Source: Podarcis melisellensis
Taxonomy: Eukaryota
NCBI GenBank assembly: GCA_964234715.1
Contig: OZ174280.1
Strand: one strand, 5' to 3'
Length of the DNA stretch: 64,000 bases
Shown piece by piece: positions 7,261 through 64,000 of this stretch. The notes below the pieces were generated by a model that did not search any database, was not told the DNA's origin, and was given only the letters and a program-made list of their open reading frames with translations. A program made the position numbers and the translations under genes. Numbering within the stretch: position 1 is the stretch's first letter; each line of letters opens with the position of its first letter.

Positions 7261-8094
7261 TGCCAGTTTATTGTTTAGTAAGAGTTATCTGAATCAATCA
7301 AAAGAGCCCATATTCACAACCACATCCTGAATTGGAGCTGTACCCTGCATTTTAGGCAACATCCCTACCTGTGATGAGAAGTAAAGACAGTCTCATGAGA
7401 GATTCCTGTTCAGAGCTCCATGTGCACTGAGCTTTAACATGTGAATTTAAACACTTCGCCCTTGACCTGCATCTGCAAAATGGGCTGGGGGAGGATCCAT
7501 TCACAGTGCTACCAAGCTTAGTAGTACTTACTCTAAACTAAGTGTATATGTTATACACATGGTATAGGACTGACCCCTACTACAACACAGGCAGATAATT
7601 TATTTCATCTAGGATAAATTCAAAATAGTCCTCCTACATTTATTCTTCTTTCAGATATGTTTTGCACCACCTATTTTCTGAAGTGTGGTTACCAGAACTA
7701 TATCCAACGTCCAGTCTTAGACACTTGAAAAGTAAGGTGTTAATATATGATGAACCAAAGCCTTCTCAGAAAATTTGGCTTGATAAGAAGCATTACGCAA
7801 ATAGTTGTTGGAAAAAAGCATTTTTATTGCACAGTCATATTTAGATGCTTAGGTCAATTTTAAAAGTTATGTCTAGATTCATCATCTATTGTAACATAAT
7901 ATTTTTTTAAACTCATATTGACTGGCCATGTAAATTATTAATTCATCACCATGGAACATAGCAGAAAAGGAAATAGTTCATATTCAACCATATTTTATGC
8001 AAAAAATTCTAATAGATATAATTAACACAATGTGTTCATACCAATGACTTGAAAAGTTGTAAAAATGCAACTGTATGTCAACCCCTGTATGTTG

Positions 8095-8793
8095 AACCCC
8101 TACATTTCCCACCCCGACCTGGCCACAGTGATCCATGCGACAGTCACCTCCAGGCTTGACTACTGTAATTCGCTCTACGTGGGGCTGCCCTTGAAGCTGT
8201 CCCAGAAACTCTAGTGGGTGCAGAATGCAGCAGCGAGGCTCCTCACAGGGTCTCTGCCATGGGAGCATATTCATCCAGTGCTTTCCCAGCTGCACTGGCT
8301 CCCGGTGGAGTACAGGGTCAGATTTAAGGTGCTTTGACCTTTAAAGCCCTTCAAGGCCTAGGACCCTCGTACCTACGGGACCGCCTCTCCCGGTATGCCC
8401 CACGGAGAGCCTCATGGTCCATAAATAGCAACACCCTAGTGGTCCTGGGCCCTAAGGAAGTTAGATTGGCTTCAACCAGAGCCAGGGCCTTTTCAACTCT
8501 GGCTCCGGTCTGGTGGAACGCTCTGCCTCATGAGACCAGGGCCCTGCAGGATCTGATTTCTTTCCGCAGGGTCTGTAAGACAGAGTTGTTCCGCCTCGCC
8601 TTTGGCTTGGAGCCAATTTGATTCCCTCCCCCTCTTTCTTTTTTCTTTTTCCTTTCTCCTCCTGCGATGAGGCTGCATTTTAATATTTTAATGTTTCAAT
8701 ATTTTAATTGTTGTATTTTAATCTTGTTTTTATTATTGCCCTGAGCCCGGCCTTGGCAGGGGAGGGCAGGGTATAAATAAAAAATATTATTAC
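8095..8793 (+). mobile_element. 5'-truncated L2 LINE (ORF2 C-terminus and 3' UTR), inactivated
   Basis: Encodes ...DLATVIHATVTSRLDYCNSLYVGLPL... and TFKALQGLGPSYLRDRLSRYAPRR...KTELFRLAFG, highly similar to the 62-64 kb ORF. Has an in-frame TAG and a frameshift, and ends in GCCCTGAGCCCGGCCTTGGCAGGGGAGGGC...AATAAA. Confidence 0.95.
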
Positions 8794-9822
8794 TCCCCTG
8801 CAATTATTGTTTCCTATGATCAGAGTTCTATTTATGTCAATGCACTATTATTCAAGAAAATGGGGTTATCTATTGTAACTGGCCTCTATAATTCTCAGAT
8901 AAGAAAAAGAATATGGAGTGAACAATTGTAGACAAGCTGAACTGTAGACTTTTTGTTCTGTTAAAGATGCTTTTCTAGCTTTGATTGCTCCTAAACAAAC
9001 AATTTAATTTAATGAATAAAGATGTGTGCAAAAGGAATAGTTTCTAAAGGGGGATGCTTCACATTCCTTTTAGATGATGTATGCTCTAGTATTCCCTAAG
9101 AGTGAATGGAATAATGAGCTTATACTCTCTTTAGACAGAATGCAGAAAGAACCTATTCCAGCTCATCCAGGTTCCAGAGTGGATTTCTGAAATCTATTCA
9201 GGATGCTGGAATCTCCTCCAAGCATAACATGTTTCTTTGTCAGCCATTCAGTGCATTGGAGGATCCAGAGCAGATGTAGGGATATCTAGCCTATCATAGC
9301 TCCTCTGGGCCAAATTAGGCATACTGTATTCTTCACCCATGCCCCAAAAACACCAGGGACTCCCAAACATGGGAAGAATGCAGGGAAGCCAAGCTGGTGT
9401 CTTCCAATTGTAATTGGACTCCAACTCCCATCAGCCCCAGTCAGCATGGCCAATGGTCAGGGATGGTGATGATTAACTGATTTACATGCCAGAATGGTCT
9501 CTAAGTGAGCTATTAGGAGTAATGGTACAACAAGCTATAGAGGGAGGACACAACACTGGCTACTGGTTGGGACATGGCTCAGAATGGCCTTGGTTGTTCT
9601 GTCCTCTGGCTAGGATGGCCCTGAAAAGATATTGGTGGTTTCCCCAACCCCCGGGGAAAGTAGCCTCATCCTTCTTAGAGTTTTCTTCCATGCATTCTGA
9701 GTTCTGAGTCATGACACCAAGCATCCACATCTCATACCGAACACAAAAACTATACTTTCCGACATACTTTGCGTGCTTGCCCAGGCCTTCTGCTGACAGG
9801 GCTCATGAGGTGAATCCCACCA

Positions 9823-10082
9823 AGTGTGGTGTAGTGGTTAAGAGCGGTGGACTCGTAATCTGGTGAACCGGGTTTGCTTCCCTGCTCCTCCACATGCAGC
9901 TGCTGGGTGACCTTGGGCCATTCACACTTCTCTGAAGTGTCTCACTCACCTCACAAAGTGTTTGTTGTGGGGGAGGAAGGGAAAAGGAGATTGTTAGTCG
10001 CTTTGAGACAACTTAGGGTAGTGATAAAGCGGGGTATCAAATTCATACTCCTCCTCATCTTCTTCTTCTTCTTCTCTTCTTC
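9823..10082 (+). mobile_element. Squam3-like CORE-SINE (MIR/Ther1-derived)
   Basis: tRNA head GTGTGGTGTAGTGGTTAAGAGC, CORE-like GCTGGGTGACCTTGGGC, L2-type 3' end and (CTT)n tail. Confidence 0.92.
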
Positions 10083-17944: not shown

Positions 17945-18193
17945 AGAAGAAGAAGAGGAAGAGTTTGGATTTGATATCCCGCCTTTCACCCCCTTCAGGA
18001 GTCTCAAAGCGGCTAACAATCTCCTTTCCCTTCCTCCCCCACAGCAAACACTCTGTGAGGTGAGTGGGGCTGAGAGACTTCAAAGAAGTGTGACTAGCCC
18101 AAGGTCACCCAGCAGCTGCATGTGGAGGAGCGGAGACGGGAACCCAGTTCCCCAGATTACAAGACTACCGCTCTCAACCACTACACCACACCA
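17945..18193 (-). mobile_element. Squam3-like CORE-SINE
   Basis: Reverse complement of the 9823 family, with the tail appearing as (AGA)n on the + strand. Confidence 0.92.
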
Positions 18194-28440: not shown

Positions 28441-28547
28441 GTAAAAAGGTAAAGGTAAAGGGACCCCTGACCATTAGGTCCAGTAACTCTGGGGTTGCGG
28501 TGCTCATCTCGCTTTACTGGCTAAGGGAACTGGCGTACAGCTTCCAG
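28441..28547 (-). mobile_element. Sauria SINE 3' fragment
   Basis: GGTAAAGGTAAAGGGACCCCTGACCATTAGGTCCAGT, matching the tail of 364-698. Confidence 0.9.
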
Positions 28548-29385: not shown

Positions 29386-30762
29386 AGATATTGAAGTTTT
29401 TCAGGATTTCATGTTTCACAGACTTTTGCAGGCATGAAGATGTCAGTAATTCGGAATGGTCATTTGCAGTGTTTTTCTCCCCCCCCCCAACCTGACATTA
29501 GTTTTTTATGTGTGCAATTCATCACAATAGCAAACACTCTTTGCTTCTGAAATCCGTGGATTCTACATTTGTTTTTACATCTAAAATTACATCTCTCAAC
29601 TGTTCATTATTGCCTCACGTAACTAAATCTTCAGTGTCAAGGAAGTTAACATCACTTCAGCCCAAACATTCACTAGCAATTTTCTTTGAAGGAGGCCGGA
29701 ATTTATTTGGCCTGACCTAATCATTGATCTAAATAGGTTTTCTTTAAACTGCCTGACAAAACAGACTTATTCTTGTTTACTTTGCTCATGCATTGGAGTT
29801 ACATTAATGGCCCAGTCTTCTACTGCACTGGTAAGTGAAGACCACATCACACAATACCTTTTTTGCTGCATAAAGGTTATCCTACATGAAGTCAAGAAAC
29901 CATTCTGTGAAGAACACAAAGTGTCTATGTTCTCAGGCCTTTCTCTAGAGGTAGTAAGGGTAAGCATTGGAACAAGTGCCCACCCAATGGACCACTGTCC
30001 AGCAGTGATATGCTCTTCAATTTGCATGGAGTATACAAGAAAGCGTGGTGTATTTCTCAGTTCATTGCTCCAAAAGACTACCTTCTCCAAGCCTTCCAAA
30101 GCCTGGGGTCTGCACTGTAGTTTGCCACTCAGCATGTTGGTAACATGCTGTGTATATTGGCTTTTAAAGATCTGTGTCCTCTCCAGTTGCAACACAACAA
30201 CACTTGCATGATAATGTACACAATTTTTAATAAGCAAAACGTTGTGGATGATATGGCAGTTGCCACAACTACTAACCCAATGTGGTCAAATTCCATCCCC
30301 CATCCCCCAACTTGCAGAATATTAAAGCGGGGAAGATGGGAGAAGTTATTTAAATGGTGCAATGTGCAAAACAAAGCAAGTTGTGGTTTGAGGATATAGG
30401 TTTGTGCATCTGTTTCAGTCATGTATGTGTGCAAATAAGCAGCCGGGGTTGCTTGTGGACTGTAGCCTAAGACTGCCCATTCAGTATTACTGTATGGGTA
30501 TGAGGAACTGTGAAATTGATGGTTTAAAATACCCTAAATGATATCTATAGATGGCAGTAGTACTTAATCTCATTTGAGGCTGAAGAGACATGTCTGCTCT
30601 TTCAAGGAAAAGTGTGTTGATTTGAAGAATTTGTGTTAAAATATGGACAGAATTATCTTAATTCAATTTTACTTGAGGGTTCTCTACCCTTAGCAAAGGA
30701 GTCATGTGCTGAGCTCAAGACTCTATGGAGGAAATGGGATCCTCCTAAATTGAGGGTCCTGA

Positions 30763-31509
30763 TTGTGCTCAGACCCCTTAAGCCACCCCCACGGGGTGAG
30801 CTGTTACTAGGCATGGCACAAACTTTGTCAGTTGGGCCGTGGGATCATGCCTGGCTGTTTGGGCCAATTGGGGCAGGTGGCATGATCCTGGGGTCCTATA
30901 AATGCTGCAACGTGATGTAGGTGGAGTACTTGCTTTGCGCTGCCGAACACCCGCCCTCCCCCCCTAATTTGGTGCTACTAATTGCCCTTGGTTTGGATTG
31001 GGTTGCCTGCTTTGGAGCTGGGTAGGAATTTTTCCATTTGGCAAATTGGCTTTGGCCACTTGGTTTTCACCTACCCCCTTAGCAATCGTAACAACTTTGT
31101 AAGGTTTGGCAGTTAGGCATTGGTTTATAGAAATGTCCGGGAGGGGAGGTGTGGCCATCACCTGCCCCTCCAAAAATAGGGCATTCTGGTAAAGGAATCT
31201 GGGGGTCCTAGATCTCATCTGAAGTCCGCTTGAGAGGCTAGGGCCATGCCAGGATCACAGGAACCCTGGGGTGAGCTTCAATCGATCTTCACCGATGTTG
31301 CTCCCTCATTTGGTGTTTACCCTTTCAGACTGCCAGCCGGAGAGGCAGGAGTCAGTTATAGTGCCTGACCAATGCCTAGGCCAATACCACTCAATTTGTT
31401 TTGTAATCAATAAAGTTGTGGCCAAAATTTTGCCCGAAAACTTAAACTAAAATTATGTGTCCATTTGAATTTGTTTACTGGGTAAGGGCTTGGGGGCCTA
31501 AGGGTGCAA
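30763..31509 (+). mobile_element. Solo LTR-like terminal repeat (probably Ngaro/DIRS group or LTR retroelement)
   Basis: CCAAT (30863), TATAAA (30897), CACCCGCCCTCCC tract and AATAAAGTTGTGGCC (31409). Ends are imperfect inverted repeats TTGTG...TGCAA with no TSD. Related to 36100-36748. Confidence 0.65.
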
Positions 31510-34500
31510 AAGTTATATTCATGTCAAGAAGAAATGGCACACGACCAGCTGCTTGCTGATTTCAAATGAGAAAAAAGAGTTAGTGTAGATACTTCACATA
31601 GGGCTTAGCTCTTCCAGGTCATGAAACAGAACACAAGGCAGGAACGGGAGGCATTTTTGCCTTTTTGCAAAGGACGTGTTGCACAAGTGCGATGCAGAAA
31701 TAATATTGTTGCTTAACTTTTTGGAGGGGGCAGGATTGCATCCCAACTTCTTTTAAAAAAAATCTCAAACAAGCAAATAAAACATAAAGCAAACATTACA
31801 AACCCTGAGTTCTCCTGAATGGTTTTCAGTCCAAGCATCTGAAGTGCTCAGCTCTTTCCTGCATCCAATGGATATGATTTAACTCATATTGGCTCTAAAG
31901 AAACAAACCTATTTCTGCAAACTCAGGAAATAGCCTATTCTGAGCCAATTCAATGTGAGCTGGAGTGTGTGGGTGTGTTTGCAAATTAGTAATTATTATT
32001 TAAATGTTGGAGGCAACCAGAAACATTGGAGCTATAGAATTAATTTTAAAGTAATCCATTTTATGGATTCCAATTCAGCTAATCAAGAGACAACCTTTCT
32101 AGCAGATAAAGAGAATAAACAAGAAACCTTAAGTTAGCCACCTTTGATCTGTGTTCACCGCAGAGGTCCAGAACTGCTACATCCCACTGTGACACTGAAT
32201 GCAGAAATACGTATGCAAAGATATCCTTTATTAACAGAATAGTACATTAAGGTCTGTCCAGAATGAGCTGAAGCACTTAAATGTACATTCCAAATGGTAT
32301 TTTATTACTAGGGGGAAATCTTTTTTCCTGAAGATCACCCATTCAAATTCAGGTGACTACCTATACAACATCACCGTCATAATTAGTACCCTCATTGTCA
32401 GTCTCCTGTTAAGAGGCCATGGATTAATGGGTACAGAGGACCAACTACACTGCCATTGCTAGATAATAAAATGCTGAAAGATATTCATAGGGCCACATCA
32501 GAAAATTTGCCCCTTAAGCCAATGGTACAATGCTTGCCTTTACTGATAGAGATGTTCATTTTTGTGGTGTGTCAATTTAATTTGGTGTATTTTAAGGAAG
32601 TTTAAAATCAGTTAAATTTAAATTCAACTGCCCTTATGAATCCGGCTCCCAGTGTTGTATAGAGCAATATATGTTTTTATTTTATTCATGGTAAAAGCAT
32701 CTTAGGAAAGGTTTTTCTGAAGACATTGTCCTTCTCATGGAAGGAGAAGTGGCTCAGCAAGGCAAATTTATATCCTGCTCTCCTGGTGCAAAAATACCAC
32801 ACAGAGTGGCTGCCAAGGTTTAAAATGAGAAATTTACAAAACATTATTAAACAGTCAGCCTAGGAGATATGGTCAGCAAGCACAACCGAGCATTAAAACT
32901 CATTGGGATAAAATGTGCATTACTCCAGTTCTGAGACACACATTTAACATTTTTTTCTTCCCCTTTGAATTGCTCTGCTCAGGTAGTATTGAAATGTGAC
33001 AGAACACAACCTGGCCCTGTTTTGCCAAGTTCTCCAAGCTATACTAGTTATACTTCACATGTTCTGTAGATAACAATAACCAGGGCTTTTTTCCAGCCAG
33101 AATTTACCAGAACTCAGTTCTGGTATCTCTCACCATTGACATTCTATAAGAATGAGGGACATGTTCACGGTGAGTTCCAATACCACCGACAATAACACTG
33201 AATTTCCTTCTTTCAAAGTCCCTTAAATAAGATGAAATTGTTAGCCTGATAGAAGTCTATCCCACTATCCAGTATGAAACCACCAACAAATAATAAATAT
33301 TGTTATTTGGCACTATCTTAATGAACAGAGAGGAAAAGTGCTAAAGGAAACTTTGCTTGAAGTTGCCATTATATTTTTCCTCAGGCACTCAAATAGCTGT
33401 GTCAACTAATGAGGATGCTAAAATGGTGCTGTGGTTATTTCAACAAGACAAGAAGGCTCTTAAAAGAGTCCCAGAAGACAATGGTCGTTCTTTGATGTGC
33501 AATAGGTCAGAATTGACAGAGCTTTTGTCTCTAAGCTTTTTATAATAATGAGGTGGAAATTCATGAATCCCCCCCTTGCTATTTAGCTGAGGAAACAGAC
33601 CTTTGCTTCATTTCCTGACTGTGCACCTTTGATTACCACCGAGATTTGTTTCTTACTTTGCACTCTAGTGAATTTAATTATCAGTTGTTGCCAAATTTAT
33701 ATTATGAATCTGACCATTAAAAATTCCTCTTAACATAGTGCTGAGCACTTAATGGCACTTAAAGAACCAAATGAAACTGCATTACATGGAGGCACTAATC
33801 AGAAGGCTAGAAAAGCCCCAATCAGCTGGAGTAGTTAGATTCATTTAATGGCATATATGATTTAATTTTAAAACAGCTAAATTGAAATATTGCTGAGGAT
33901 GTTGCAACAAATCAAAGGCAGACTAGGGAAATAAAAGTTGTGGTTTGCAGCTTAAATTTGTGGCTTCAGTTTAGTCACCGTGTTTCTGGAGGGAAACCCA
34001 AAAGAGTGGACTGGAGCCAGAGAATTCTGCTCACAAAATATTGCCGTAAAAGTGGGGGGTGATTTTTACCAATCGCTTCTTACCAAATCTGCTCTAGGGG
34101 ATTGCAGAACAGGTCTTGTGCAAAGAGTGGGCAGCAGGGGCATTGGGGAACCTGTGAAAACTGCTGCTCTCTTCTTCTACACCCTACCAGCATGAGCCTT
34201 CAACGCAGCTCAGTTCCTTCTCTGAGCACAGGATCAAATCTAGAAATGAAATGGCAAGTCTAAATGTAAGCTACCTGTCTGTTGATTATACTTCAATATA
34301 TGGATCTAAGAATATTCTTGATATAAGCTAATGAATACCCCAAATATATCTAGAGATGTTACAGTGGAAACTGATTATACATTTATAATCAGTGTAGACT
34401 GATTATCTATTTCAAGCAGCATCTTTAAAACATATATGAAGACTGAAAGTAAGTGATGATGTGGGTGAAATATTCAGTTGGCATCTGGTTGGCCACTGTG

Positions 34501-35519: not shown

Positions 35520-36099
35520 GGCAGCAGTGCTATATTTGACATTTTCCCATAAAAATAGGTTTAAAAAATGGCTGGTTTATTTTCGATTTTGCCCAAAAAA
35601 CTTTTCTATCTGGAATTTTATTACCCACCCAGAAATTGGAATTCCCAATAACCTGATGCTGTTTTAAAAGTGGAAATGATTAGACCCAGATTAAGTGGCA
35701 CAACTCACATTATTATTTTGTTGTCTATATTTCAGTAGTCTCAAAGTAGCACAGATGTTGTAAGAGTGTGGTGATCTGTCATGGAACAACCCCATTGAAG
35801 GAGATAAGAGTAGTTACCCATATCTCATTGCTGATTGCAAAGGGGCACCCATGACAGTTCAAGTTTCAGGGCCCCAAAAATGTAGGTCCACCATTTTGTG
35901 TGGGTTGCTTCTTTGGTTTTTGTGGGTTGTTTGTTTTTGTTTTGTTTTTTTAAATGAGGTGTCACTACTCCTCACTTGATAAAAGTGTCATTGGTGATTG
36001 CACAAAATGGCCGCCATGGGCAGAACAAAGATCTGATGGTATTCTTTACTAGTGAGTACCATCACACAACAAAAAACTGCTATATAATTCATCAATATT

Positions 36100-36748
36100 T
36101 ATCAATATCCCCAGCTCCCAGGTATCATAAGGAAGGAATAAAGACTCTGACAACGTTACATGGAATTAAAATTAGGCCACAACTTTATTAAACTTCCTGG
36201 GGGAACTGGGGCTCATCAGAGTAAATGAGATATGGGGGTGCTCTGTGAGACGTAAGTGTAACAGGCAGGCAAGCCCATATCCCTGCACAAGGGGGACCCT
36301 GGAATCGCCACCGCAGGGGGGGGGGTGAGTCACCACTACACACACACACACACAGAAGAAAAGACTCAAGGATTCCACCCAAGGCCATAACCGCCAAAGT
36401 TGAGACGAATTGCTACAGGGAAGACAAAACCTGCCAATGCAGGAAAATTTCTTCCTGGTCCTTCAACAGCAGCCAGTCAAGACCATAGCAGCGCCCGCTA
36501 AACAGGAAGAAAAAGTTAACCTGCAAACAAGAAACATTAAACAACGGGAGGGTGAATCTCTAGAGCTGACTGCCTGGCTATTGTCGGCTCTAACCCCTAT
36601 TTATAAATGGGGCTGGCCCCACCTCCCAGCAAGAAACTTGATTCCTGAGGCTGGGTGTGAACCTCCAAAAATGAACACTGAGAGGCAAGCCAGCCCCTGT
36701 TTGCCAGTAAGCTCCCTGGGAACTGTAGCACCACGCACAATCCCGCAA
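36100..36748 (-). mobile_element. Solo LTR-like terminal repeat, diverged relative of 30763-31509
   Basis: Minus strand has TATAAAT (about 36600), the core TAGCAATTCGTCTCAACTTTGGCGGTTATGGCCTTGG (cf. TAGCAATCGTAACAACTT...TTTGGCAGTTAGGCATTGG) and AATAAAGTTGTGGCC (36175-36189). Confidence 0.65.
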
Positions 36749-37326
36749 AGGGCACCCACAATGTAAAGTGTGAGTGCTCATTAATAAAAACAGACAAGTG
36801 CATGTTCCAATTCCAGAATTTTTTTAATGTCCTGGTCATATTGGAATTTGGAAGGAATGCAGCCCCTTCCATTTGCATGTTGGTTAGCTGAAGTCTTGGT
36901 AAATGCAGAAGAGTGAAGAGGGCTAAAAGCCACATGTTTCAAAATAACCTAGCAGATCTTTGGCTGCTGGTTGCAAGCGTCCCCACAGCATTCTCTTTAA
37001 AATTCTTCTTGAACATACGATGTGTGTTTCAATTACAATACCTCATTACAGCATCCAGCTTACATCTCAAAGCGTCCAATTTTTCAATTAAGCCCTTGCA
37101 TGCAAAATGACCTTCATGCTACTCTCTCACAAAGTGTCTGGCCACAAACAGGCATGAGTGGCAAGCTGAAACTAGACCAACTCCAAGCCAACTCCCAGTC
37201 CAATTATAAAGGCAGACAGAGGGGGGGGAGGGAAGCGAGAGGGGATATGGGGGAATATTGTAAGGAATAGCTGTTGCATGCAGAAATGATGACATGACCT
37301 CAGGAAACTAAATGGGGGCATTTGCC

Positions 37327-37413
<87 letters not shown>

Positions 37414-37414
37414 A
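37327..37414. repeat. (AAAG)n microsatellite
   Basis: About 22 perfect tetranucleotide units. Confidence 0.99.
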
Positions 37415-40400
37415 CAGCTGGGATGGGATGTCTGTCAGTGTCAACAAGTTGCAAAGAGACTCAACACATCCTTCAAACGAGCAAACCATGGCGTGCCAGG
37501 TATTGCATCACACAAAATGACAGATTCCAATGTAAATTAAGCTTGACTTTCTTTTAGGAAACCATGGCTATCTAAGGGACTGATTTGTTCAGCAAGTGTA
37601 ACTTCGGAGCACAGAGCTGCAAGTGGGGTTGGCCATTTGGGGATGTATAAATTTCAAAAAATAGTGGCTTCACGAAATGTGGATTAGGTCTGTTCTCACT
37701 GAAAGGTGAAACTGAGAACGCCCCACCCCTGCCTCGCCATGCATTACTGAAGTTTGTTTGGAGCCAGTAGGTTGGAGAGTGCTCTTTTACTAACATTTGA
37801 GAAAGGCTGATACTGAATGAGACTGGTAGGGCCAACAGAAGGCAGAGCTAAAAACCACTGACTGGCAGGGGCAGAGCCAATGAAAGGTAGAAGCAACTAA
37901 ATCTAGTTTTGTTCCCATCTTCCTTTCTGCTCAGTTCTGCAAATGCAACATGAAACCTAAGGAGGAGAAAGCTGACAGCCAGTGCCACCGCTGGATAGGT
38001 TGTAAGCAGGAAAGGTAGGTGGGAGGAGGGTTGACCAAAGGAAGTGGGGGGGGTGGCAGTATCCCATTTGCCCTAATAGATCAGCCACCACTGTTAATAT
38101 GCGCTGATGTCCAATGCTGATGACGATCAACTGCTGCTTATTTGTATGCCACCTTCCCACAAAAGTGTGCCAAAAGTACCTCACAACATATCAAATGATC
38201 AATGAGTATAACATTTTTTATAAAAAAGAAGATAAAAACAATTACAAATAATCATAATTCTAGTAAGTAATTTAAAAATATATATCCGTACAACATTGCT
38301 TAAATCAATACAAATAAAGTAAACTAATTTAACAGCTTCAGCTCAATAGAAGGGAGAATACTATTAATAATAACATACCAGCAAACTCCCTTGCCTGTTA
38401 CAGGGATGATTCACATACCAGGGCATCCTTCTTTGTGAAGGCATTCCTGCATAATAGACCAATGAAAGTAGAAAAAGCTGAAATCAGCCTTCAAGCAAAA
38501 GGGAAATCTCATTCAACTGCAGCAACAGACCCAGCAAGAGATTTAGGCTCCCGGAAGGCACACACCAGCCATTGCTTCCCATCTTTTGTGTTGGCCTTAA
38601 AGAATAAACATGCAACAGAGTTTGTACCGTTCTCCAAAACTACCACCCAGACAGTAAACAGAATGCACAGCTTTAGGGATCTTCCATCCAGTAGGTGGCA
38701 GTATAGACCTCCCTGACTCTGATCCTTTTTGCTGGCCCAATCGTTTTCGCAGGATTTCAAAACGCAAACTGCGCACACTATTTTAAAAACACTGTTAGGA
38801 CCTGCTATTGTATTTCTTAATAAAAAGAACTGCCAGAGGAGAGGCAAATCTACACTGGGAACAGGGCACTGGGTAGGTGGGATGTTCACTCTTTTATCTG
38901 TACCACTTTGATGTCCAAATGCTGCTATTTGGCCCCCAAGTGCTATAAGTATTAATAAACAGATCACACACACAAACTTAGTTTTTTTTAATTATTGGCA
39001 TTTATTTTACTTAAGCTATAAGCTGCCTTATAGGGTACAGGCAACAACAACCACTTCTTAGTAAGATCCAAAATGTATTTCTGTTCCCCCACCCCCATGA
39101 AACTTTTTCTTTTTAACCTACAATGCGGATGTTTATTGCATCACAGGTTGTCTGTGCCACTAGCATGCTCTCCCCTCAGCAAACCAGGCAAAAGAAGCGC
39201 CATGGAGCTGCCTGCCATTTCTAGTTTAAACAGTCCGATTTCCTGATCCCTCATTTTGAATACTGTCTGGCAACCTCACAAATCAACTGACACTGAAGTC
39301 AGCTTCTCAGGTTGCTGCCAGATAGCCTGCTTACAGGTCATTCATTCTTATTTGTTCACAGGGAGGTTAGATGGTATTGCGTCAAAGCAAGTGCAATGGT
39401 ACAGAATATTTTCCCTCACTTTCCTTAACTCAAACAGTGGCTTGTTGTACAAAGCCTCCCAATCAACTATAATTGTGCAACTTGAATTTTCTGGTATGTG
39501 ACTGAATCTCACCCAAAAAACAGCACCCTCACTCTAAGCAGTCTGAGTAACCACACTGGCTGCTATTTATTGGCCCAAAAGCAAACTGCCAAGCAAAATG
39601 ACTGGCTCAGAAAAAGAAGGAATATGTGAATGCCTTAACAAATACAGTCCCTTCCGCCGCTGAGGAAGGCATATCTATAATCGTAAGTACTACGTAGAGA
39701 AGTCGGCAATTATGTTTCATAGATATGAAAGCAAGGCGCTGAACTTTGTTCATGTACACACAAACACACACATTGATGTAAACACTTCAAAAGCGTTGTT
39801 ATACGTAGCTTCTCACTTCATTAAAATGTCCTTGGTTAAGAACACACACACACACCAAACCCCAGAACGTAATTCATTTGTGTCATCATGTTTTGCCAAA
39901 TGGAATCATGACCTCCGCAATTCAGAGATGAACGGCACCAGAATCAAAGCCCATCTCCAGCGGTAGTATTAAATATGACAAGGCAAGTACAAGCCAGGTC
40001 TAATAGCAAAAGACTTTTGACTTTTTTTAAGATGTTCAATCGAACATTTAAAAGGTTTTGTCTGTATCAGGTCTAGAAAGCACCCCTGGGGCAGGCTTAA
40101 GTAACTATGCCATTAGGCACAGAGCTGCAAATTGCCTATTAAGCCTGACTGAAACTGTAAAATTGCTTTTCACAATGCAAATTAATGTAAATAAGAACAA
40201 TTGGTTACACATATCAGAGACTATCAAACTGTCAAAGATGATGCAGTCTGCTTTTTCCCCTGGAATTAGCATTACTTTAAAGTTATATTTAGTTCACGTT
40301 GAGTCCCGGGTATTCCTGTGATGAATTCTTCAGAACTATTATAAACTGCCACATATACACAATAATATCTGCCCTCCTGCCTGCCAAAATCCTTATTAAA

Positions 40401-47285: not shown

Positions 47286-47640
47286 CAGGGTGACCAGATG
47301 CAAAAGAAAAGAAGAGGAGGAGGAGTTTGGATTTGATATCCTGCTTTATCACTACCCTAAGGAGTCTCAAAGTGGCTAACAATCTCCTTTCCCTTCCTCC
47401 CCCACAACAAACACTCTGTGAGGTGAGTGAGGCTGAGAGACTTCAGAGAAGTGTGACTAGCCCAAGGTCACCCAGCAGCTGCATGTGGAGGAGCAGGGAA
47501 TCGAATCCGGTTCACCAGATTACAAGTCCACTGCTCTTAACCACTACACCACTACACCACACTGGCTCTCCTGCCAGTGTCACTCTGGCCCCTTTTTTAG
47601 CTATGTAGAACAAAGTCCCCTTCCACATCTGGTCACACTA
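47286..47640. mobile_element. hAT-Blackjack-like MITE interrupted by a Squam3-like SINE
   Basis: TIRs CAGGGTGACCAGATG and CATCTGGTCACACTA (13/15) bracket the SINE. Confidence 0.65.
47310..47570 (-). mobile_element. Squam3-like CORE-SINE
   Basis: Full-length reverse copy with an 8-bp duplication (CCACTACA x2) in the head. Confidence 0.92.
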
Positions 47641-50472: not shown

Positions 50473-50823
50473 GGGACGTGGGTGGTGCTGTGAGTTAAAC
50501 CACAGAGCCTAGGACTAGCCTAGGTCAGCTGTTCGACTCCCCGTGACGGGGTGAGCTCCCGTTGCTCGGTCCCTGCTCCTGCCAACCTAGCAATTTGAAA
50601 GCACATCAAAGTGCAAGTAGATAAATAGGTACCACTCCAGTAGGAAGGTAAATGGTGTTTCAGTGCACTACTCTGGTTCGCCAGAAGTGGCTTTGTCATG
50701 CTGGCCACATGACCTGGGAGCTGTACGGTGGCTCCCTCGGCCAATAAAGTGAGATGAGCGCCGCAACCCTAGAGTCGGCCATGACTGGACCTAATGGTCA
50801 GGGGTCCCTTTACCTTTATCTTT
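50473..50823 (+). mobile_element. Sauria SINE (Squam1), near full length
   Basis: GGGACGTGGGTGGTGCTGTG head, GGGGTCCCTTTACCTTT tail and 11-bp TSD ATATATCTCTT (50462-50472 and 50824-50834). Confidence 0.95.
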
Positions 50824-51485
50824 ATATATCTCTTAGTGGCTGTTCATCCCTGTTTCTTTTCTCTTTTGTGTACTTGCTTTTTTTTTAGTACATTTATATT
50901 CTGCCTTTCTTCCATTTTGGAACTCCTTCCTCTCCCAGTCCCTGTTGCTTTGTTTTCAGAGACTGCAAGGTGGTTTGAAAATGCGGTTGAAGCTCAGGAC
51001 ATTTATACTCAATTTTATTTCACCTCTGAAAAACAGGTTTTTCAGGATTTTTGCATTGCTTCAAAAACCCACAGCAACATTTGAGCTGATGGGATGGGGG
51101 GAGCAAAAGAAATGGGTCTGTGCCCTGTGGAAAGTGCTGTCCCTCTCACATTGCTTTCAGTTATCTTTAAAATATTTGTCTCTCTCTAGCCATGATGAAC
51201 TCCATTATATGGAAGAAGCCCTCATATATAAAACTTCATGTGTTAAGGGGGATATCTCATAATCACAGGTATCTTTTAGTTGTTTGAAATGTTGTGAGAC
51301 AATGCAGGCACATGAGAGGAGAGGCAGAAATATTTTAAATAAGTAACTCAATCATTCCTGGTGGCTGGAAAAGATGCTGTGATGACTGCAGGAAGCATTG
51401 CACAGGGATTCACATGCAACAATAAACCCTTCCTGAATTGAGTTACTTCAAAATGATGGGGTGGATGAATCAAATGATTTCTCGG

Positions 51486-55070: not shown

Positions 55071-55395
55071 AGAAGAAGAAGAAGAAGAAGAAGAAGAAGA
55101 AGAAGAAGAAGAAGAAGAAGAAGAAGAAGAAGAAGAGTAGTAGTAGTAGTAGTAGTAGTTTGGATTTGATATCCTGCTTTATCACTACCCGAAGGAGTCT
55201 CAAAGCAGCTAACATTCTCCTTTCCCTTCCTCCCCCACAACAAACACTCTGTGAGGTGAGTGGGGCTGAGAGACTTTGAAGAAGTGTGACTGGCCCAAGG
55301 TCACCCAGCAGCTGCATGTGGAGGAGCGGAGACGTGAACCCGGTTCCCCAGATTACGAGACTACCGCTCTTAACCACTACACCACACTGGCTCTC
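55071..55395 (-). mobile_element. Squam3-like CORE-SINE, young, with an expanded (CTA)n(CTT)n tail
   Basis: Full head GGAGAGCCAGTGTGGTGTAGTGG, several CpGs intact, and a compound trinucleotide tail at 55071-55158. Confidence 0.95.
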
Positions 55396-61943: not shown

Positions 61944-64000
61944 AATAATAATAATAATAATAATAAATTTTATTTATATCCCGCCCTCCCCAGCCGAAGC
62001 CGGGCTCAGGGCGGCTAACAACACCAAAATAGTGCGACATTATAAAAACATTATAAAAATTAATTAAAATCAAGATTGATGGCAGCCATAAAGTTTTGTA
62101 AAGGTTGCCAGAGGAGGGAGTCAGGCTGCGCCCTAACCAAAGGCCTGGCGGAACAGCTCTGTCTTGCAGGCCCTACGGAAGGATGTCAAGTCCTGCAGGG
62201 CCCTTGTCTCTTGTGACAGAGCATTCCACCAGGTTGGAGCCGCAGCCGAAAAGGCCCTGGCTCTAGTTGAGGCCAGCCTAACCTCTCTGTGGCCTGGGAC
62301 CTTCAAGGTGTTTTTGTTTGAAGACCGTAGGTTCCTCTGTGGGGCATACCACGAGAGGCGGTCCCGTAGGTACGAGGGTCCTAGGCCGTATAGGGCTTTG
62401 AAGGTTAAAACCAGCACCTTAAACCTGATCCTGTACTCCACCGGGAGCCAGTGCAGCTGGTATAGCACTGGATGAATGTGATCTCGCAGCGAAGACCCCG
62501 TAAGGAGTCTCGCTGCGGCATTCTGCACCCGCTGGAGTTTTTGGGTCAGTCTCAAGGGCAGCCCCACGTAGAGCGAGTTACAATAATCCAGTCTGGAGGT
62601 GACCGTCGCGTGGATCACAGTAGCTAGGTCAGGGCGAGAGAGGTAAGGAGCCAACTGCTTAGCTTGGCGGAGATGAAAAAATGCCGCCTTTGTAATAGCT
62701 GCAATCTGCGCCTCCATGGAGAGGGAGGTATCGAAGATTACACCCAAACTCTTAACGGACGGTGCTGGCACTAATTGCACCCCCGCAAGAGATGGGAGCT
62801 GCCCCCTCAGTCCCATATCATCCCGTCCCAGCCAGAGGACCTCTGTCTTCGAAGGATTTAACTTCAACCGGCTCCCACGCAACCATCCAGCCACAGCTTC
62901 CAAGCATCTGATCAGTGTGTCTGGGGCCGAGTCAGGATGGCCATCCATCAACAGATAGAGTTGGGTGTCATCAGCATACTGATGGCAGCCCAGCCCAAAA
63001 CTCCTGACAAGCTGGGCGAGGGGGCGCATAAAGATGTTAAAAAGCATCGGGGAGAGAATCGCACCCTGAGGCACTCCACACACCAAGGAGTGGCACGATG
63101 ACAATTCCCCCCCAAGCGCCACCCTCTGTCCCCGACCAGAGAGAAACGAGCGCAGCCATTGAAGGACTGTGCCCTGGATCCCCACGTCGGCAAGGCGGTG
63201 GTCCAGAAGTTCATGATCGACCATGTCAAAAGCTGCTGACAAATCTAGAAGAATCAGCAGCCCCGACCCGCCTCGATCCAGCTGTCTACGAAGATCATCT
63301 GTTAGGGCAACCAGAGCCGTCTCGGTCCCATGGCCAGCGCGGAAGCCGGACTGGAATGGATCCAGAGCCAATGTTTCATCCAGAAACCCACCAAGCTGTT
63401 CAGCAACCGCTCTCTCAATCACCTTACCCAGGAACGGAAGATTCGAAACCGGGCGGTAATTGGATAGATCTAAAGGATCTAATGATGTTTTCTTTAAGAG
63501 CGGGCGCACCACTGCCTCCTTCAGTTCCCCTGGGAATGTCCCCGTGCCAAGGGACAAATTGATGATATCCCCCAGGAGGGCCCGCACCTCGTCTGGACAC
63601 GCTCTAATCAGCCAAGACGGGCACGGGTCAAGAGGACAGGTGGTGGGCTTTCCAGCTCGGAGGAGTCTGTCCACATCGGCTGGGGATATCCGGTCGAAGT
63701 GGTCCAATACTGGACCCGAGGACAGTCGAGGGGCCTCCAATTCCTTTATTGTATCCAAATTGGCAGGGAGGTCATGGCGGAGCGACAAGACCTTCTCCGC
63801 AAAAAAGCTCGCAAATGCCTCACAGCTGTGTGTCAATTTGTTATTTAAATTTGGCTGTCCTTCGAGGGACGTTAAAGACCGAATTATACTAAATAATTGC
63901 GCCGGGCGAGAGCTAGCGGATGCAATGGAGGCCGAGAAGTAGGACTTCTTAGTGGCCTTCACAGCCATCTCGTAGGTTTTCATAAAAACCCTATAAGATG
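61944..64000 (-). mobile_element. Young L2 LINE, 3' 2 kb; continues beyond the window
   Basis: Intact RT ORF, about 190-nt 3' UTR with a terminal stem-loop, AATAAA and an (ATT)n tail. GC- and CpG-rich relative to the flank. Confidence 0.97.
62133..64000 (-). CDS. L2 ORF2 reverse transcriptase (partial; frame stays open past the window edge)
   Basis: More than 616 aa without a stop. RT motifs NYRPVSNLPFLGKVIE, DPFQSGFR, LLDLSAAFD, GVPQGAILSP, YADDTQLY and LKLNPSKTE, then L2 C-terminal LHWLPVEYRIRFK. Confidence 0.96.
   Translation of the reverse strand, partial: SYRVFMKTYEMAVKATKKSYFSASIASASSRPAQLFSIIRSLTSLEGQPNLNNKLTHSCEAFASFFAEKVLSLRHDLPANLDTIKELEAPRLSSGPVLDHFDRISPADVDRLLRAGKPTTCPLDPCPSWLIRACPDEVRALLGDIINLSLGTGTFPGELKEAVVRPLLKKTSLDPLDLSNYRPVSNLPFLGKVIERAVAEQLGGFLDETLALDPFQSGFRAGHGTETALVALTDDLRRQLDRGGSGLLILLDLSAAFDMVDHELLDHRLADVGIQGTVLQWLRSFLSGRGQRVALGGELSSCHSLVCGVPQGAILSPMLFNIFMRPLAQLVRSFGLGCHQYADDTQLYLLMDGHPDSAPDTLIRCLEAVAGWLRGSRLKLNPSKTEVLWLGRDDMGLRGQLPSLAGVQLVPAPSVKSLGVIFDTSLSMEAQIAAITKAAFFHLRQAKQLAPYLSRPDLATVIHATVTSRLDYCNSLYVGLPLRLTQKLQRVQNAAARLLTGSSLRDHIHPVLYQLHWLPVEYRIRFKVLVLTFKALYGLGPSYLRDRLSWYAPQRNLRSSNKNTLKVPGHREVRLASTRARAFSAAAPTWWNALSQETRALQDLTSFRRACKTELFRQAFG

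Follow-up and report, generated by a model that had tools for sequence, protein, structure and literature searches.

Two diverged retroelement-like units in a lizard genome share a hairpin with facing U tracts and compensatory stem changes: a possible ENE-type structure

The window considered here, the whole 64-kb stretch of Podarcis melisellensis DNA that was analysed, has the composition of vertebrate DNA (GC 0.41, CpG observed/expected 0.21). Two islands with a GC content of 0.50, each roughly 600-700 nt long, lie in surroundings with a GC content of 0.39: unit A, on the plus strand, and unit B, on the minus strand. CpG retention is slightly higher in both units than in the surroundings, and the difference in GC content fits what would be expected of inserted elements. 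Unit B and the signals of both units, with distances given to the hairpins described below, are as follows.

~36175-36765, minus strand: unit B, GC-richer (0.49-0.50), non-coding, with AT-richer flanks; ends approximate
36605-36599, minus strand: TATAAAT of unit B, 150 nt upstream of hairpin B; a predicted promoter, read directly
36189-36184, minus strand: AATAAA of unit B, 230 nt downstream of hairpin B
30897-30903, plus strand: TATAAAT of unit A, 123 nt upstream of hairpin A; a predicted promoter
31409-31414, plus strand: AATAAA of unit A, 333 nt downstream of hairpin A

Inside each unit TATAAAT and AATAAA lie in one orientation, which is the layout of an LTR-type unit, and direct reading places hairpin B between the two on the minus strand, as the original prediction had it. 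Because the orientation is the same in both copies, the U-rich strand of the hairpins falls in the predicted RNA. Neither unit contains a noteworthy ORF. A parent element with adjacent ORFs for a reverse transcriptase (RT) and a tyrosine recombinase or integrase had been anticipated; the stretch from 27.5 to 40.5 kb contains 54 ORFs of 50 aa or more, none with a Pfam match, so no RT, recombinase or integrase adjoins either copy (within 5 kb). The 64-kb window holds no repeat partner for unit A or unit B, no third copy of the conserved module described below (nhmmer with the A+B module), and neither split direct repeats (A1 ... B1 A2 B2) nor inverted terminal repeats with an internal complementary region. 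A search for TG..CA ends flanked by target-site duplications returned many chance candidates and nothing convincing for unit B. Unit A has one candidate (30751-31424, with an AAAT duplication), but the homologous ends in B lack a matching duplication.

Several more definite assignments were considered and rejected. A and B are not opposite, inverted ends of a single DIRS-type element: they are nearly unalignable, far too diverged for such a pair, and have nothing coding between them. A primer-binding site or polypurine tract was rejected from reading the sequence, and a candidate internal tandem duplication in unit A (~300 nt) is not significant, since 35 of 200 shuffles score as high. The units are best called LTR-like or terminal-repeat-like retroelement remnants, and the copies in the window are probably dead.

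The only RT ORF of the window (62133-63983, minus strand; 616 aa, RVT_1 E 1.9e-35) reaches the window end. Its 3' end recurs in inverted orientation (8091-8629 versus 62113-62655), and the ORF together with the copy at 8.1-8.6 kb resembles a LINE-type family in which one copy is truncated at the 5' end, unrelated to A and B.

Each unit contains a hairpin of the same architecture, in which two stems are separated by an internal loop with U tracts on both strands.

36455-36419, minus strand: hairpin B, 37 nt, read directly and folded
36455-36450 (GGAAGA) with 36424-36419 (UCUUCC), minus strand: lower stem of hairpin B, 6 bp
36449-36444, minus strand: 5' loop of hairpin B, AA+UUUU
36443-36439 with 36434-36430, minus strand: upper stem of hairpin B, CCUGC/GCAGG, 5 bp
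36438-36435, minus strand: apical loop of hairpin B, AUUG
36429-36425, minus strand: 3' loop of hairpin B, UUUU+G
31020-31076, plus strand: hairpin A, 57 nt, with a 7-bp lower stem, a loop of AA+UUUUU on the 5' side and UUUU+CA on the 3' side, and a longer, interrupted upper stem
31037-31067, plus strand: 14-nt tandem duplication, 2.2 copies, forming the upper stem of hairpin A

The string that the original prediction gave for 36416-36459 is present, with one correction: the 5' loop begins with AA rather than AAA. The hairpin itself occupies 36455-36419, within that interval. In hairpin B two C-G pairs close the upper stem directly at the U tracts. Its minimum free energy (MFE) structure has an energy of -15.3 kcal/mol and makes up 85% of the ensemble (z = -3.7 against 200 dinucleotide shuffles); hairpin A folds at -20.9 kcal/mol (z = -3.0, dinucleotide shuffles). 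The 14-nt tandem duplication suggests that the upper stem of A was lengthened by slippage, with pairing left intact.

Folding was extended to predicted transcripts running from ~30 nt past the TATA box to ~25-30 nt past the start of AATAAA (415 nt for B, 503 nt for A). The lower-stem pairs have probabilities of 0.75-0.98 in the predicted B transcript and 0.99 in that of A, and the U tracts of both are at least 0.9 unpaired in the whole transcripts, with or without a 30-nt A tail. An ENE is defined as a hairpin with a long internal loop, mainly U on both strands, near the 3' end of an RNA (PMC7583470, PMC8704770, PMC12501189), and adjacent G-C pairs support the triplex and A-minor contacts (PMC7583470, PMC8704770, PMC12501189). 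In these models, from secondary-structure programs that cannot represent the triple helix itself, the open U loop appears pre-organised as an ENE would require. The opposite strand of the hairpin folds equally well, because all of its pairs are Watson-Crick, and the choice of strand therefore rests on the orientation of TATA and AATAAA.

A shape descriptor was written for these hairpins. Each of its two T runs has a length of 4 or more; the upper stem, of 3 bp or more, ends in G-C pairs that adjoin the runs, and the lower stem, of 5 bp or more, lies no more than 2 nt from them. The descriptor matches only hairpins A and B on both strands of the window (128 kb); dinucleotide-shuffled windows are expected to give 0.47 matches each, or 0.23 if the lower stem is 6 bp. 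Since the descriptor was derived after A and B had been seen, this count is supportive rather than a clean test. Other candidates were set aside. A hairpin-like stretch at 31645-31671 and a fragment upstream of A that resembles the hairpin flank are not significant; a Pol III type-3 gene is contradicted by the T runs, at which transcription would stop short of a complete hairpin; and the NF-kB-like site in GGAATTTTCC lacks its first G in B and leaves the stem changes unexplained.

Similarity between the units is concentrated in a module around the hairpin and a second block at the poly(A) signal.

36472-36391, minus strand: conserved module B, made up of the P1 5' arm CUGCU (36472-36468), the hairpin and a 3' block
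36415-36395, minus strand: 3' block of module B, TAGCAAT-T-CGT-CT-CAACTTTG, whose AGCA can pair with P1
31007-31103, plus strand: conserved module A, made up of the P1 arm, the hairpin and a 3' block
31080-31099, plus strand: 3' block of module A, TAGCAAT-CGT-AA-CAACTTTG
36189-36168, minus strand: poly(A)-signal block B, AATAAA followed by GTTGTGGCC and then 7 bases; 20/22 identical to A
31409-31430, plus strand: poly(A)-signal block A, 333 nt past hairpin A

In a hand alignment made from the coordinates, modules A and B are identical in 59 of 78 aligned columns (76%), and the RNAalifold consensus retains P1 as well as both hairpin stems. The 3' block starts 4 nt past the last stem base in both, with 3 unpaired nucleotides between. 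Its pattern (TAGCAAT, an optional base, CGT, two bases, CAACTTTG) specifies 18 bases and is found at 2 sites in the window; like the shape descriptor, it was derived after A and B had been inspected. Farther downstream of the hairpin, AATAAAGTTGTGGCC is exact in both units, collinear and in the same orientation, and the match extends to 20/22; a 15-mer repeat by itself is not rare in 64 kb.

Over their whole length the units align poorly. The global A/B alignment score is 299, compared with a mean of 247 and a maximum of 293 for 64 genomic control segments, and with nhmmer the best match of each unit in the window is the hairpin region of the other (E 0.11 and 2). The alignable parts are ~100 nt around the hairpins and the 22-nt poly(A)-signal block; identity elsewhere is at the level of chance, including the region before the TATA box (25% ungapped). 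The presence of GATTGTGC at equal spacing from the TATA box was rejected as an anchor, since that register is only 25% identical without gaps and an 8-mer match is expected about 1 time in 3.

Judged from these comparisons, B is convincingly a positional homologue of A by common descent, which follows from four features taken together: the hairpin shape, the flank block at equal offset, the collinearity of the poly(A) block and the TATA box upstream. The original prediction, that most of the two elements barely aligns, agrees with this outcome.

The sequence AATAAAAGTTGTGG at 33930-33943 (plus strand) looks like the poly(A) block that A and B share, except for an additional A. It has no GC-rich unit or hairpin upstream and is probably a chance occurrence or a tiny fragment. 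In viral and metagenome contigs, a search with the flank-block and poly(A)-block patterns gave two chance matches, in bacterial coding sequence, and otherwise none. The motif GGGT-N4-CGTTAAAGG occurs at chance level only.

The lower stems are GGUAGG/CCUACC in A and GGAAGA/UCUUCC in B. Their best sequence alignment is also the structural one, with a single 1-nt gap, located in the U tract. Four of 12 bases differ, and these four changes amount to two pairs altered on both sides (U-A to A-U and G-C to A-U), with no pair broken. Under a simple neutral model, with four unlinked changes distributed over 12 bases, all six pairs would stay Watson-Crick with a probability of about 0.003. The upper stem has been rebuilt: in A it consists of CCA..UGGC with GCCA..UGG, interrupted and duplicated, and in B it is a plain 5-bp stem. 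What the two hairpins have in common is the U tracts (U5/U4 in A, U4/U4 in B), the CC/GG closing pairs and AUUGGC at the tip. The main structural claims of the original prediction, namely two compensatory pairs in the outer stem, an inner stem differing in length and sequence, and retention of the U tracts, closing pairs and apical motif, are thus borne out.

That all six pairs came through four base changes intact speaks for constraint on the fold, and for a comparison of two sequences a structural constraint on the hairpin is reasonably supported. Template switching during replication of inverted repeats can also yield paired changes without selection, and can create and maintain hairpins as well. 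The earlier proposal of selection on RNA structure holds in part: the lower-stem probability favors it, while template switching can mimic the pattern and there are only two sequences.

The hairpin could instead have no function. It would then be an inherited inverted repeat, its paired changes would come from template switching or chance, and the resemblance between A and B would reflect uneven decay. The small number of sequences and the weak nhmmer E-values are in keeping with this, as are the strand symmetry at the DNA level that goes with all-Watson-Crick pairing, the ability of template switching to generate hairpins, and the post hoc descriptor, for which about one chance match per two windows is expected. 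However, conservation is very uneven, reaching 76% and 91% in the two blocks as against chance elsewhere, and the U tracts, closing pairs and flank block were kept through a remodelling that left the upper stem still paired. Absence of function is considered unlikely.

The two best conserved blocks, the 3' block of the module and the poly(A)-signal block, are mutually complementary in A and in B.

31091-31100 (ACAACUUUGU) with 31410-31419 (AUAAAGUUGU), plus strand: long-range helix A, 10 bp, one of them G-U
36402-36395 (CAACUUUG) with 36187-36180 (UAAAGUUG), minus strand: long-range helix B, 8 bp, P = 0.10

Helix A has a P of 0.005 against composition-matched shuffles. Helix B is part of the MFE structure of its predicted transcript, with a probability of 0.39; the pairing probability of helix A is 0.02, because a rival helix of 12+5 bp (31114-31130 with 31356-31378) is preferred. 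The rival pairing involves a perfect 12-bp long-range inverted repeat plus 5 bp in unit A that has no sequence counterpart in B. In the models, either helix would close the stretch of 220-260 nt from hairpin to poly(A) signal and place the 3' end near the hairpin. Pairing of the two blocks could hide AAUAAA or move the 3' end up to the hairpin.

This complementarity allows a reading in which the module serves replication and the hairpin is just a neighbor. The 3' block would pair with the poly(A)/terminal block in a DIRS-like manner, or, where an end is repeated, would mask the poly(A) signal of one of its copies. There is a precedent in DIRS-type elements, whose internal regions are complementary to the element ends (PMC9210276), and the complementarity of the internal and terminal blocks here recalls that arrangement (PMC9210276); it joins the two best conserved blocks. 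Unlike Ngaro/DIRS elements, the units have neither ORFs for RT, RNase H or a recombinase within 5 kb nor split direct repeats in the window. The helix is also short (8-10 bp, with P of 0.10 in B and 0.005 in A) and without covariation, its probability in A is only 0.02, and the U tracts are left unexplained. A role in replication appears distinctly improbable. A text search found no literature link between Ngaro elements and RNA triple helices.

The preferred reading is that the hairpin acts on the poly(A) tail. Known ENE-type triple helices guard against decay in viral RNAs, in MALAT1 and in the RNAs of some plant retrotransposons. In the KSHV PAN ENE there are five U-A-U triples, and three A-minor triples on the G-C pairs of the lower stem (PMC7583470). 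ENEs in transposable-element RNAs are mostly from plants and fungi (PMC12501189, PMC7583470, PMC8704770); the other hosts listed are a slime mold and one stickleback retrovirus (PMC7583470), the latter being the one entry for an animal mobile element (PMC7583470). The ENE of Arabidopsis Evade/Copia93 shields its RNA from deadenylation by CCR4a and raises mobility (PMC12501189).

Hairpins A and B resemble the PAN and other viral ENEs in their facing U runs, in the G-C pairs above the loop and in their location upstream of a poly(A) site. They differ from PAN in having 4 U facing 4 U, spacers beside the lower stem and, in B, an A-U top pair; they also lie 230-333 nt from the poly(A) signal. With the double ENE of rice TWIFB1 and with Evade/Copia93 they share a hairpin with a U-rich loop hundreds of nucleotides before the poly(A) site. 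Most of the plant elements have two U-rich domains, whereas A and B have a single domain with shorter U tracts, in a lizard host. The Evade ENE lies before the 3' LTR, and the distance of a few hundred nucleotides to AATAAA in A and B is not unlike this, but their hairpins lie between the TATA box and AATAAA of the same unit rather than in the interval from an ORF to a 3' LTR. MALAT1 and MEN-beta are comparable as vertebrate RNAs in which a U-rich internal loop clamps an A-rich 3' end. Their loops, however, are interrupted by C or G, and their partner is an A-rich tract encoded in the genome and produced through RNase P cleavage at a tRNA-like structure; no tRNA-like element or matching A-rich tract of the MALAT1 kind was seen at A or B.

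Only part of what defines an ENE is found in hairpins A and B. U lies on both strands of the loop in each, and two C-G pairs adjoin the U tracts on the upper side in both copies. On the lower side the U tracts do not adjoin the stem, since spacers of AA (5') and of G or CA (3') intervene, and the top pair of the lower stem is G-C in A and A-U in B; this side is atypical of an ENE on account of the spacers and the A-U pair. A search of the window with Rfam 15 as a whole gave no match at gathering score, and none at E up to 10 in either unit. Counted against ENE function, then, are the limit of 4 possible triples, the spacers, the A-U top pair in B, the 230-333 nt to AATAAA, equal folding of the opposite strand, nhmmer E-values of 0.11 and 2, a helix A probability of 0.02, and the sample of two sequences. 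The original prediction regarded the second copy as independent support for an ENE, which is overstated: B is a relative of A rather than an independent origin, and the comparison comprises these two sequences only. Structural conservation suggests that the hairpin matters; it does not imply poly(A) binding.

Alternatively, the hairpin could be a selected structure in the element RNA that does not bind poly(A). It might offer a host or element protein a docking site, on the U-rich loop or on the AUUGGC tip, act in packaging or dimerisation, or aid transcription or export as R-region stem-loops do in retroviral leaders; all of the structural evidence for an ENE applies here as well. If the predicted TATA box is used, the hairpin would lie about +95 to +155 from the predicted start, a usual place for retroviral R or leader stem-loops. 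TAR-type hairpins of retroviral R or leader regions are similar in being stable hairpins between TATA and poly(A) signal in an LTR-like unit, although they have no paired U-rich internal loop, and LTR ends of the TG..CA kind with a duplication could not be fixed here. Conservation of the AUUGGC tip and the 20-nt block as sequence would suit recognition by protein or RNA, and the incomplete set of ENE features points in the same direction. On the other side, the facing U tracts and C-G closure, kept even though the upper stem was rebuilt, are a specific ENE signature with no obvious use in the other roles, and no protein motif or palindromic loop was found. A structure of this sort is possible, if somewhat unlikely.

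The best explanation as a whole, itself short of probable, is that A and B are old, related retroelement remnants in which the module was kept and the hairpin takes up the poly(A) tail. The two would be separately inserted, non-coding remnants, either terminal units of an LTR-like kind or terminal-repeat modules from a tyrosine-recombinase element. Each would have a TATA box, a non-coding transcript of about 400-500 nt and a poly(A) signal. During the active period of the parent elements, nearly everything would have diverged except the poly(A)-signal block and an RNA module of ~100 nt, consisting of a short outer helix, the hairpin with its U-rich loop, kept as structure, and the 20-nt block. 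The open loop, with U4-5 facing U4 and two C-G pairs above, may take up the RNA's own poly(A) tail and form U-A-U triples with it in the manner of an ENE; with such a triple helix in place, deadenylation and decay would be slower and template RNA more abundant. By pairing with the poly(A) block, the 3' block could draw the tail towards the loop. ENE function by itself is a plausible, specific and testable hypothesis to be held tentatively, and the fuller claim, of a lizard retroelement family with a working single-domain U4/U4 ENE and a conserved tail-positioning helix, is rather unlikely to be right in all its parts.

ENEs are almost undescribed in animal mobile elements. If the ENE reading is true, a covarying ENE-shaped hairpin would extend this strategy of RNA protection to reptile transposons, and would offer a short natural variant (4+4 U, with spacers) bearing on the minimum requirements of poly(A) clamping, as well as an animal transposable-element ENE with a built-in positioning device. 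By itself the window is of modest value, with one diverged copy and two compensatory pairs.

Other repeats are present in the window. A SINE-like family of ~240 nt has copies at 17952-18189, 47315-47552 and 55148-55385 and, inverted, at 9819-10064, which are 81-93% identical. A second family (362-698, 28442-28544, 50473-50826) starts with GGTAAAGG repeats, like squamate SINEs. Near unit B there are a T/G-rich tandem repeat (35895-35949) and a perfect (AGAA)22 microsatellite (37327-37414), and a CpG-richer patch at 39500-39999 has an observed/expected ratio of 0.56, compared with about 0.15-0.25 around it.
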